Source: Podarcis melisellensis
Taxonomy: Eukaryota
Length of the DNA stretch: 64,000 bases
Strand: one strand, 5' to 3'
NCBI GenBank assembly: GCA_964234715.1
Contig: OZ174275.1
Translations under genes and position numbers: made by a program
The notes under the pieces: model-generated
The model's input: the letters and a program-made list of their open reading frames with translations, nothing else
Database searches by the model: none
What the model was told of the DNA's origin: nothing
In this document: positions 8,783 through 40,684 of the stretch, in pieces
How positions within the stretch are numbered: position 1 is the first letter of the stretch
Layout of the letters: each line of letters opens with the position of its first letter

Positions 8783-8864
8783 GGACTGCTTCCCCCATAT
8801 ATATATATATATATATATATATGCAGGTTAACCTGCATTCCTGTACCCGTGAAAATCTACGAAA

Positions 8865-8916
<52 letters not shown>

Positions 8917-8993
8917 TTTCGTAGATTTTCACGGGTACAGGAATGCAGGTTTTGGTGTCCTCGGGTGTCTTCCCGTGTAAAAGTTGGGGTGTC

Positions 8994-9036
8994 TAGGCGA
9001 CGTTTCGACGAGGTCTCACTCGTCATCTTCAGGCTG
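8994..9036 (-). ncRNA. Minimal type I hammerhead ribozyme (minus-strand copy)
   Basis: Reverse complement of 9471-9513; core at 9032-8999. Confidence 0.75.
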
Positions 9037-9470
9037 GTGCTTTCGGCTTCTTGTTACTGGAACAGAGCAGGATCTCAGTGTTTGAGTTCCTATAAATACT
9101 GTTGAGGGGGTGTGGTGTATAGCCTCCAATGTTCTGGGCAGAGAGGAAGTTCCCAGGCTAGTGTGCCTTTTCTTCTTTTGTTCCTTAATTACTTGAGGGA
9201 TATCTTGAGTGATTTCTTGAGTGATATCCTGAGTACCACTTAGGTACTCACCTAATGACCCACCTAAGTGGTACTCAGGATATCACTCAAGAAATCACTC
9301 AAGATATCCCTCAAGTAATTAAGGAACAAAAGAAGAAAAGGCACACTAGCCTGGGAACTTCCTCTCTGCCCAGAACATTGGAGGCTATACACCACACCCC
9401 CTCAACAGTATTTATAGGAACTCAAACACTGAGATCCTGCTCTGTTCCAGTAACAAGAAGCCGAAAGCAC

Positions 9471-9513
9471 CAGCCTGAAGATGACGAGTGAGACCTCGTC
9501 GAAACGTCGCCTA
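9471..9513 (+). ncRNA. Minimal type I hammerhead ribozyme
   Basis: CTGAAGA (9475-9481), T, stem II GACGAG/CTCGTC with TGAGAC loop, GAAA (9501-9504), palindromic loopless stem III ACGT, GTC cleavage triplet ending at 9508; stem I is weak. Confidence 0.75.
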
Positions 9514-9559
9514 GACACCCCAACTTTTACACGGGAAGACACCCGAGGACACCAAAACC

Positions 9560-9610
<51 letters not shown>

Positions 9611-28410: not shown

Positions 28411-29003
28411 GGATGACTTGTCAAGCCAGAACATCCTACACAGAAGATGAAGTTCTTTGGGGCCATCGTTTCTTCCCTGTTATTTCCTTAGAGGAAGGAT
28501 TCTTCAAAGTAGACTATTCCCAGTTCCATGCAACGTTTGAAGTCCCTACAGCACCTTACAGTGTGAAAGAACAGGAAGAAATGCTCCTTATGTCCTCCCC
28601 ATTAATAGCACCAGCTGTAAGTAACAGTAAAGAAAGGAATAATTCTGTAGAATGTCTAGATGGCATAGATGACATTGGTACAAAGCTACCGTCAAAACTG
28701 CAGAAAATGACTGGAAGGGATGACTTTCCTAAAAAACTGCTGAGGATGAGTTCTACCACTTCGGAAAAAGCCTACAGCATGGGGGACCTACCTTTGAAAC
28801 TCCAGCGAATAAGTTCTGTCCCTGGCAACTCAGAAGAGAAACTGGTATCTAAAACCACAAAAATGTTGTCAGATCCTATGAGCCAGTCTATGGCAGACTT
28901 GCCACCGAAACTTCAAAGATTATCCGGAGGAGGAGGAGGAGGTAGAATGGAAGGAAACCTCCCCCCAAAACTGAGGAAAATGAATTCTGATCGGTTTACA
29001 TAA
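28411..29003 (+). CDS. KCNJ3: G protein-activated inward rectifier K+ channel 1 (GIRK1/Kir3.1), terminal coding exon
   Basis: [46 protein letters not shown]...[11 protein letters not shown] is the diagnostic GIRK1 C-terminus; intact frame with TAA at 29001-29003. Confidence 0.98.
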
Positions 29004-37916: not shown

Positions 37917-39365
37917 AATTGGTGTATCATGAACATCCGAATCCATTTCTTTTCCTCCTCTGATCAGTACAATTAATTATTTGCTTAGGTCAGTTTGGGC
38001 AATGCAAGATTTAAAAAGTATTAAGCTTGATTTTAACTGCTGGTTGAGAGCACATTTTCTCCTGTGAGGGCTCTCCCCTAAACGCACTGTATTGAAACCT
38101 TTAATTGAAAGGAATGGCTGTTGTCTGTAGGTAATAGGATCTGCACAAAAGCAGAATTATGAACTTTCATTACAGGGGGAAAATGGATTACATAGTTGAT
38201 TTCAAAAGAAATGGACACTGCAGACACAGCAAGGGCAAAGCATCAATTTTAAAAGCAACCAAACTAGGTTTGGCACAAGAATTCATCTGCATTTAATTGC
38301 ATCCATTTCCTGACTAGCCTGGCTGAAGAGTTCGACTGCATTGTGAGTTCCACTGTTGGGCTAAAGAGACAAGCAGTAGAATTTTAACCCTAGGATTTCT
38401 TGCTAAGAATAATTGGATAATGACTGGTTGACTGCTTTCTGCCAGTCTCAGTGATAATGCCTGTAATGTGCCAGCGGATGTTAAAAGTTAATTTAGACAG
38501 GATTCCAGCAGCAATGACAGATGAAGAATCTGGAACTTATTGCTTTTAAAAGCTGATTGAGATGATAAAAATATGTAACAATCTAGTGTCATTCTTATGA
38601 TTTGGCACTTTTCTAGGGTATGTGTTCTATAAAATGCTAAGCCATGACTTATTCTAGGGTGTGCTTGTAAAAAAACCGCTACTGATGATACTATGAAAAC
38701 TAATAAAATATTAGTTTAATCAAATATTAGATAATCAGGAAATTATCAGTTTTCATAATAAATAAAGACTACCATTTTCATAGGGATGACTATGAATTTA
38801 GTTGTTGTCCTAAATATATAGAGCAGAGGTTGAATGAGAAATCATTTTCCTCTCTAAAACCTGTGTTGTATGTGTGGCAGGAAGTGGGGCTGAGATCCGA
38901 TTTAGAAGTGGAGCCATACATAGAAAATGGCTTCCTTCAGAAAATGGATTGCTCTAGAGCATTTTTTAAAATAAAATTTAGGCTGGAACATACCGGTAAT
39001 TTAAACTGCAATTGTGGATTGTTTTAACAACCAAACTCTTCTGGGAAACTAATAATTAAGATGAAAAAAACATTTGATCTATTTCCACGAAGTCACCCTG
39101 ATCATTATTTTTAAAAACAACAACACCAGACTGTGATACAGCAGTCTTATGTGTTTCATCTAGGAGATTATGCACATATCTTTGGAGTAATATTTCAAGT
39201 GCTTTTCATAGCAATCATCCTGTACTTGGAAATGCTGTAAACAGATTAACAAAACCAGCACTGCTCTCATTTTAAATAGTACTTAGGCTCAAAATTAGGC
39301 TTCTTGTAAGTGGTTCAACATGTTATCATTTTAATTTCTCTCAAAGTGAAAATGTCAGATGTATG

Positions 39366-39714
39366 NNNNNNNNNNNNNNNNNNNNNNNNNNNNNNNNNNN
39401 NNNNNNNNNNNNNNNNNNNNNNNNNNNNNNNNNNNNNNNNNNNNNNNNNNNNNNNNNNNNNNNNNNNNNNNNNNNNNNNNNNNNNNNNNNNNNNNNNNNN
39501 NNNNNNNNNNNNNNNNNNNNNNNNNNNNNNNNNNNNNNNNNNNNNNNNNNNNNNNNNNNNNNNNNNNNNNNNNNNNNNNNNNNNNNNNNNNNNNNNNNNN
39601 NNNNNNNNNNNNNNNNNNNNNNNNNNNNNNNNNNNNNNNNNNNNNNNNNNNNNNNNNNNNNNNNNNNNNNNNNNNNNNNNNNNNNNNNNNNNNNNNNNNN
39701 NNNNNNNNNNNNNN
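39366..39714. other. Assembly gap (N run)
   Basis: Run of N. Confidence 1.
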
Positions 39715-39816
39715 AATTCCTCTTGCCCATTTGTGTGGCAAAGTGAGACTTTTCAGAACAGCATGAAATGATTAAGGCTGCCAGGCTAATCCCACTTGTT
39801 TAGGAGTAAACCCCAT

Positions 39817-40684
39817 TGACACCAAACTGGGAGTGGTGGCTAACACCCCAGAGGACAGGATCACACTTCAAAACGACCTTGACAGATTAGAGAACTGGGC
39901 CAAAACAAACAAGATGAATTTTAACAGGGAGAAATGTAAAGTATTGCACTTGGGCAAAAAAAATGAGAGGCACAAATACAAGATGGGTGACACCTGGCTT
40001 GAGAGCAGTACATGTGAAAAGGATCTAGGAGTCTTGGTTGACCGCAAACTTGACATGAGCCAACAATGTGACGCGGCAGCTAAAAAAGCCAATGCAATTC
40101 TGGGCTGCATCAATAGGAGTATAGCATCTAGATCAAGGGAAGTAATAGTGCCACTGTATTCTGCTCTGGTCAGACCTCACCTGGAGTACTGTGTCCAGTT
40201 CTGGGCACCACAGTTCAAGAAGGACACTGACAAACTGCAACGTGTCCAGAGGAGGGCAACCAAAATGGTCAAAGGCCTGGAAACGATGCCTTATGAGGAA
40301 CAGCTAAGGGAGCTGGGCATGTTTAGCCTGGAGAAGAGGAGGTTAAGGGGTGATATGATAGCCATGTTCAAATATATAAAAGGATGTCACATAGAGGAGG
40401 GAGAAAGGTTGTTTTCTGCTGCTCCAGAGAAGCGGACACGGAGCAATGGATCCAAACTACAAGAAAGAAGATTCCACCTAAACTTTAGGAAGAACTTCCT
40501 GACAGTAAGAGCTGTTCAACAGTGGAATTTGCTGCCAAGGAGTGTGGTGGAGTCTCCTTCTTTGGAGGTCTTTAAGCAGAGGCTTGACAACCATATGTCA
40601 GGAGTGCTCTGATGGTGTTTCCTGCTTGGCAGGGGGTTGGACTCGATGGCCCTTGTGGTCTCTTCCAACTCTATGATTCTATGA
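39817..40684 (+). mobile_element. CR1 LINE, 5'-truncated, young; ORF2 C-terminal part uninterrupted (39833-40612)
   Basis: LQNDLDRLENWA...FNREKCKVLHLG...EKDLGVLVD...LYSALVRPHLEYCVQFWAP...RRLRGDMI; 3'UTR ends ttccaactctatgattctatga. Confidence 0.97.

Follow-up and report, generated by a model that had tools for sequence, protein, structure and literature searches.

Poseidon_Ac (PAc), a Penelope-like element (PLE) of the Penelope/Poseidon clade from Anolis carolinensis, is the subject of the only biochemical study of PLE integration, in which the later steps were left open (Frangieh et al. 2024, PMC11167929). The purified PAc protein, which is predicted to dimerise, cleaves AT-rich DNA and, unlike R2 or L1, cuts and extends both strands (PMC11167929). 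Initiation takes place at internal RNA sites without homology to the target, and the PAc tail corresponds to approximately nt 85-119 of the ORF, lying between two RT start sites (PMC11167929). The PAc hammerhead ribozyme was found to cleave only with its protein, and no RNA-seq ends were found at its cut site in vivo (PMC11167929).

The minimal hammerheads (min-HHRs) of metazoan PLEs are characterized by an enlarged helix II with an unpaired base at its 5' end, the absence of a helix III loop and a short helix I; they occur mostly in truncated PLE copies, have been described as dual motifs on opposite strands 100-700 bp apart, and are only weakly active, also when present as dimers or trimers (Cervera & De la Pena 2014, PMC4209133). 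PLEs in general display heavy 5' truncation and an adjacent inverted, 5'-truncated copy, with a tail of 30-40 bp that is often present at one end only, while a (TA)n insertion bias has been reported for Naiads and a microsatellite bias suggested for Neptune (Craig et al. 2021, PMC8557442).

An inverted segment also arises in the twin priming of L1, said to have been described by Ostertag and Kazazian in 2001, in which the second target strand reportedly primes reverse transcription as well.

We analysed a 64,000-nucleotide stretch of the Podarcis melisellensis genome (contig OZ174275.1 of assembly GCA_964234715.1), hereafter the window, in which a first-pass annotation had noticed a long inverted repeat with a hammerhead motif on each strand. 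The locus is a known kind of object, namely a twin or inverted truncated PLE insertion with min-hammerheads. We consider it probable that it represents a young PLE integration scar, of Penelope/Poseidon-type architecture, in a pre-existing (TA)n microsatellite of the last KCNJ3 intron.

Anatomy of the palindromic locus

The first-pass annotation had read the two arms by eye as exact reverse complements around a 16-nt spacer. An inverted-repeat search gave the same result: arms of 303 nt each (8943-9245 and 9262-9564), 100% complementary, separated by the 16 nt ACTCACCTAATGACCC. The palindrome itself was thus correctly placed at 8943-9564; the extent given for the locus was too narrow, leaving out a second perfect palindrome detected by the same search (I2, 8830-8951) and three (AT)n tracts. 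The outer AT of each arm is coincidental, being the start of a tail on the left and the start of an (AT)n tract on the right; the true element ends within the arms lie at 8945 (left) and 9562 (right). The complete anatomy comprises four copies of the element's end, referred to as a to d, in two head-to-head pairs (Table 1).

Table 1. Features of the palindromic locus and of the neighbouring exon, with positions in the window.
Feature	Position	Strand	Basis
(AT)13, left remnant of the presumed target microsatellite	8797-8822		TRF
Copy a, tail-less, joined to (AT)13: final 7 nt of the element (GCAGGTT; AACCTGC in the sense orientation)	8823-8829	-	Script: a identical to reverse complement of last 7 nt of d
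Copy b, last 7 nt (AACCTGC) plus 30-nt tail ATTCCTGTACCCGTGAAAATCTACGAAAGC, abutting (AT)24	8830-8866	+	Reverse complement of first 37 nt of c; inside I2
(AT)24 between two tailed ends	8867-8914		TRF
Copy c, antisense, 331 nt: tail (8915-8944) plus 301 nt of element (8945-9245)	8915-9245	-	Repeat search, script check
Copy d, sense, 317 nt including the 16-nt spacer (9246-9261), tail-less end ...CACCAAAACCTGC	9246-9562	+	12-nt repeat and open frame continue through spacer
81 open codons, frame 0, stop TGA (9489-9491) in hammerhead loop II	9246-9491	+	Translation; mirrored at 9016-9261 (-)
Minimal type-I hammerhead motif: C3UGAAGA9, bulged U, helix II, G12AA, A15.1-C-G-U16.1, C17	9475-9508	+	
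Element ORF start; AUG (9481-9483) = A9, bulged U and G10.1 of the ribozyme	9481-9562	+	Translation
(AT)22.5, right remnant of the presumed target microsatellite	9563-9607		TRF
Last coding exon of an inward-rectifier K+ channel, GIRK1/KCNJ3-type C-terminus	28411-29003	+	Pfam IRK_C E=7.8e-18; acceptor ...ttgtag|G

Each of the four element 3' ends, all located within 8797-9607, adjoins an (AT)n tract, and the only three (TA)n runs of at least 8 units in the window are those at this locus. The four ends make use of only two end points, situated 82 and 112 nt after the AUG of the element and therefore 30 nt apart. Copies a and d stop at +82 and are tail-less, and copies b and c stop at +112 and carry the 30-nt tail, which in copy c is nt 83-112 after the AUG. 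A script check confirmed that both head-to-head pairs, a/b and c/d, consist of one tailed and one tail-less end; this suggests a testable asymmetry, which with n=2 pairs is not significant, since chance would give it in about 25% of cases if both sites were used equally. No further copies of the arm were found in the 64-kb window, using blastn with a word size of 7 and a descriptor scan.

PAc insertions likewise end at one of two 3' positions approximately 30 nt apart, at about +85 and +119 compared with about +82 and +112 here, and an AT-rich target is common to both, taking the form of a pure (TA)n microsatellite at this locus. As in the PLE insertions described by Craig et al., we observed an inverted 5'-truncated neighbour, a tail on one side only and a microsatellite that would hide any target-site duplication. 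The locus differs from those insertions in two respects: no full-length unit lies beside or between the two partners, which are both short (317 and 331 nt), and the flank contains a further, nested mini-pair (7 and 37 nt). We noted that the predicted fold of the region between the ribozyme cut site and the tail contains a stem in which UUUU-ACACGGG pairs with CCCGUGAAAA and encloses the AC-rich tail-less end; as evidence concerning the start sites this stem was rejected, being no better than those of shuffled sequences (z = -0.62).

The two arms show 0 differences over 301 bp, and another copy of the family, described below, is identical at 79 of 80 amino acids (99%). These values agree with the very young age proposed by the first-pass annotation and indicate that the insertion is very recent. 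Gene conversion between the arms could be another source of their identity.

Hammerhead motif and open frames of the element

Each arm holds the sequence CTGAAGA-T-GACGAG-TGAGAC-CTCGTC-GAAA-CGTC, and the corresponding 34-nt motif, CTGAAGATGACGAGTGAGACCTCGTCGAAACGTC, is present once per strand. That a hammerhead motif lies in both arms had been proposed from the letters; it was recovered at 9475-9508 (+) and 9032-8999 (-), with 0 matches in shuffled sequences. Specifically, a relaxed min-hammerhead descriptor gave 2 matches in the window versus 0 in 200 dinucleotide shuffles. The catalytic core is complete, with C3 U4 G5 A6 N7 G8 A9, G12 A13 A14, A15.1-U16.1 and, at the non-G position H17, C17. 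This C17 is nucleotide 9508, after which the cut had been predicted. Helix II (GACGAG/CUCGUC) has 6 bp, a 6-nt loop (UGAGAC) and a bulged U on its 5' side, and its hairpin is present in the predicted MFE fold of a single copy. Helix III is a loopless ACGU palindrome, with no intramolecular helix III, and helix I is limited to 2 contiguous pairs, G1.1-C2.1 and C1.2-G2.2. Full core, bulged U, 6-bp helix II and loopless palindromic helix III agree with the assignment to the PLE-type minimal type-I hammerheads made in the first-pass annotation.

A search against the Rfam hammerhead families, which had been put forward as a check, was negative: no family matched in the whole window at the gathering score, nor in a 1.1-kb and a 106-nt slice at E<=10. 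This result was to be expected, because loopless min-HHRs were found with a special descriptor (PMC4209133). For annotation purposes, it means that PLE min-hammerheads escape Rfam models. We accept the motif as a putative PLE-type hammerhead on the basis of the descriptor rather than of a covariance model or activity. Cofolding of two ribozyme copies did not predict an intermolecular helix III, and the exact ribozyme pattern had 0 matches in metagenome contigs. The notion that such motifs cleave efficiently mainly as dimers is at odds with the literature, in which dimers and trimers have low activity (PMC4209133) and PAc cleavage depends on the protein (PMC11167929).

The likeness to described min-HHRs extends to all core nucleotides, to the unpaired base 5' of an enlarged helix II, to the lack of a helix III loop, which would make folding depend on a dimer, and to the presence of an opposite-strand pair in truncated copies. 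The 2-bp helix I is as in the D. virilis PLE variant, min-HHRs typically having 4-5 bp (PMC4209133), and compares with about 3 bp in PAc, as counted by eye. With PAc the motif shares CUGANGA, the bulged U, a long helix II and GAAACGUC, which is present in both hammerheads. In both elements, moreover, A9, the bulged U and G10.1 together make up the AUG of the ORF (PAc consensus ...CUGAGGAUGCCUGCC...GGGCGAAACGUC), and the distance from the A of this AUG to the cut is 28 nt here versus 29 nt in PAc. At the level of sequence the two elements are apart: the ribozyme, end and tail sequences do not occur in the Poseidon_Ac supplement, and the 37-aa N-terminus could not be aligned to that of PAc by BLASTP at E<=100. 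An alignment by eye of the tail region to PAc was approximately 60% identical at the nucleotide level, which we treated as non-significant. Judged by these comparisons, the element is of a family distinct from PAc with the same architecture.

The frame that starts at the ribozyme AUG is open for 27 codons to the tail-less end and for 37 codons through the tail in copy c. Upstream, frame 0 of 9246-9491 is open for 81 codons, whereas frames 1 and 2 contain several stops each. The 81-codon frame is probably the C-terminal end of the upstream ORF in a tandem unit. If this is the case, hardly any non-coding pLTR would be left in tandem units of the family; in PAc, 126 nt separate the stop from the next AUG, whereas here the upstream frame runs into the ribozyme loop. 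The first-pass description of an ORF-less derivative has therefore to be replaced by that of two severely 5'-truncated terminal fragments, each with 81 open codons and the first 27 codons after the AUG. We also observed that the 81-codon frame overlaps the next AUG: within ATGACGAGTGA the AUG lies in one frame and the TGA in another. Inside each arm, at 9188-9234 and 9273-9319, approximately 4 ACTCAAGAAATC-like units of 12 nt (TRF period 12) follow one another in tandem and encode repeated ITQE, ITQD and THLM peptides near the inner ends of the copies.

A HMMER search with the 81-codon peptide against 1.84 billion proteins returned one match, UniRef100_A0A670HLY4 from Podarcis muralis. This entry is a model of Translin associated factor X (TSNAX), with the Translin domain at residues 52-165. 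Its last 80 residues match window positions 9249-9488, are identical to the arm at 79 of 80 positions and stop at the TGA of the hammerhead loop. Because of this identity, the entry represents a copy of the family at another, independent locus. The match also points to Podarcis or a closely related lacertid as the probable source of the window. It is either an element copy exonised as an alternative last TSNAX exon or an annotation artefact, and in this respect the TSNAX case illustrates that PLE fragments can be drawn into gene models. The P. muralis model also includes HLMT, which is encoded at 9249-9260, within the spacer; the 16 nt between the arms are thus element sequence belonging to copy d, whose 12-nt periodic repeat and 81-codon frame they prolong. 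At its first base the spacer departs from the P. muralis copy (T versus P codon), and the junction may therefore contain one non-templated base. An ORF for RT or GIY-YIG is absent from the arm fragments and from the 64-kb window, and no RT- or GIY-YIG-linked relative was returned by the search of 1.84 billion proteins, the chimeric TSNAX model being the only match.

Origin of the two arms

Copy c includes 30 nt that are missing from copy d, and copy d includes 16 nt that are missing from copy c. Since each carries element sequence absent in its partner, neither arm can be a simple copy of the other. The inequality of the arms therefore suggests that two separate reverse-transcription products would have been needed, one per target strand. 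By analogy with PAc, the likeliest origin would be reverse transcription primed independently from both target strands. In vitro, PAc cleaves and extends both strands, a reaction that would yield exactly such a head-to-head product; this precedent for two-strand priming, on which the analogy draws, is an in vitro one and comes from a different family. The likeness to L1 twin priming is that priming by the second target strand gives an inverted segment. The L1 reaction differs in that the second primer pairs with an internal site of the same RNA, leading to different, non-overlapping segments, whereas here both cDNAs start at canonical sites and cover the same sequence, leading to a true palindrome.

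The sequence of events that we infer for the locus is as follows. The element endonuclease would cut both strands of the AT-rich target, and each exposed 3'-OH would prime reverse transcription of the element RNA at a fixed internal site, either 82 nt (tail-less) or 112 nt (tailed) past the AUG. The two cDNAs, of 331 nt and 317 nt, would extend towards each other until they were joined head-to-head at 9245|9246, through either a template jump or end joining, with no more than 1 base added. An abortive round, or a second hit on the same microsatellite, may have left the mini-pair a/b of 7 and 37 nt that is found in the left (TA)n flank. The hammerhead is included in both arms because it lies upstream of the tail-less start site, at a distance of about 55 nt; it would have no locus-specific role and would need a partner copy, and probably the element protein, to cut. 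The motif comes along with the element and is not a purpose-built ribozyme cassette.

We tentatively entertain a more specific possibility, to which we attach distinctly less than even probability, whereby the locus would be the natural footprint of a symmetric integration, with a dimeric PLE RNP cutting both (TA)n strands and its protomers using different start sites. A symmetric reaction of this kind would leave each pair with a tail at one of its two ends and with cDNAs of near-equal length, as with the 331 and 317 nt seen here. If this is true, the two-strand mechanism, which has so far been observed in vitro only, for PAc, would gain its first in vivo support and could be read out quantitatively. 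Because the mutation-free scar records both start sites, two independent cDNAs and their junction at single-base resolution, the two-strand model could be put to the test without biochemistry by surveying comparable scars throughout this lizard genome. The residual interest of the locus is mechanistic, in that this natural record fits a two-strand, two-start-site integration of the kind that PAc would lead one to expect.

We weighed these interpretations against other ways of producing a perfect palindrome. The 100% identity over 301 nt and the short gap would also be expected of a single 5'-truncated insertion whose second arm had been copied, by snap-back RT synthesis or by a later DNA-level fold-back or template-switch duplication. 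RTs can self-prime, and the palindromic (AT)n flanks would conceal a duplicated flank. Such copying leaves unexplained the 30-nt tail confined to c and the 16 nt confined to d; inspection by eye showed, furthermore, that the cDNA 3' end needed for snap-back lacks a complementary upstream partner, and d and copy a share precisely the same tail-less end, as befits an alternative canonical end and not a random stop. We therefore regard a copied arm as unlikely. We consider it equally unlikely that the source of the arms was not an autonomous PLE transcript but a non-autonomous non-LTR retrozyme, in which PLE machinery mobilises a tandem or circular RNA carrying a hammerhead. Retrozymes are akin to pLTRs, neither the window nor the protein search linked an RT ORF to the arm, and an arm of about 300 nt is within the range of vertebrate units, those of reptiles averaging 176 bp with a range of 51-972 (bioRxiv 10.64898/2026.07.22.740005). 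Against this, there is no tandem arrangement at the locus, the 81-codon frame and the AUG frame meet as they would at the ORF-end/ORF-start junction of a tandem autonomous PLE, and the copies are truncated at arbitrary inner points, 16 nt from each other, that do not correspond to cut sites of the ribozyme. There is a slight possibility that two single insertions took place one after the other, in opposite orientations.

Assembly is difficult for perfect palindromes and AT microsatellites, and tandem or inverted PLE structures are known to cause assembly problems (PMC8557442), so that a fold-back or chimeric read collapsed into the consensus could in principle have doubled one real arm. We judge an assembly artefact of this kind to be very unlikely, because the boundaries fall at element ends, the tail is on one side only and the N runs (2754-2896 and 39366-39714) are far away, with unique intron sequence on both sides of the locus. 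Least probable of all, and hardly credible, would be selection of the palindrome as a self-masking ribozyme cassette or as a regulatory dsRNA element of KCNJ3. Its attraction is that the RNA of the + strand is predicted to form a 303-bp perfect hairpin sequestering the motif, and long duplexes can be edited or diced. The zero divergence of the arms reflects youth, not conservation, and the insertion mechanism outlined above would fully explain the structure. The motif itself, with a 2-bp helix I and no intramolecular helix III, is poorly suited to such a role, its relatives cleaving poorly (PMC4209133) or only with protein and leaving no RNA-seq ends at the PAc cut site (PMC11167929). A PLE integration scar, probably primed from both target strands, is the interpretation that we retain.

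Host gene and minor observations in the window

The palindrome is located about 18.8 kb upstream of the channel exon listed in Table 1. No upstream KCNJ3 exons were detected in the window with pore and beta-sheet motifs. The acceptor site and the C-terminal nature of the exon would place the palindrome in the last KCNJ3 intron. A KCNJ3-type last exon on the + strand is in keeping with the earlier statement that the antisense arm is transcribed first.

RNA from the + strand is predicted to fold into one perfect hairpin of -629 kcal/mol in which the motif is buried. The part of the self-masking proposal that concerns a duplex covering the motif is thus supported by the predicted fold; the idea of a purposeful cassette is not, the arrangement being a by-product of PLE integration. 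Masking of the motif follows trivially from this by-product, which is a known one: inverted 5'-truncated copies (PMC8557442) and dual opposite-strand min-hammerheads (PMC4209133) have been described before. Nothing points to selection or to a host function, and we infer that the insertion has none. Editing or dicing of the duplex is plausible, as a generic property of any long inverted repeat. A 303-bp perfect palindrome beside (AT)24 in a neuronal channel gene is a likely hotspot of deletion or rearrangement and a likely source of intronic dsRNA.

In an Rfam E-value search, 8821-8958 matched dozens of miRNA-precursor families of plants and animals, among them mir-5014 and MIR6217. We rejected miRNA genes at this palindrome of tail, (AT)24 and tail, all matches being below the gathering score and occurring on both strands; they are generic matches to a long AT-rich hairpin. 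The two N runs measure 143 nt (2754-2896) and 349 nt (39366-39714), and several overlapping ORFs at 39310-39771 merely span the second of them. A 259-aa ORF at 39833-40612 (+) has a sub-threshold Pfam match to TRAPPC-Trs85 (E=0.0016, 18 bits versus a cutoff of 26.7), which is probably due to chance or to a repeat-derived frame.
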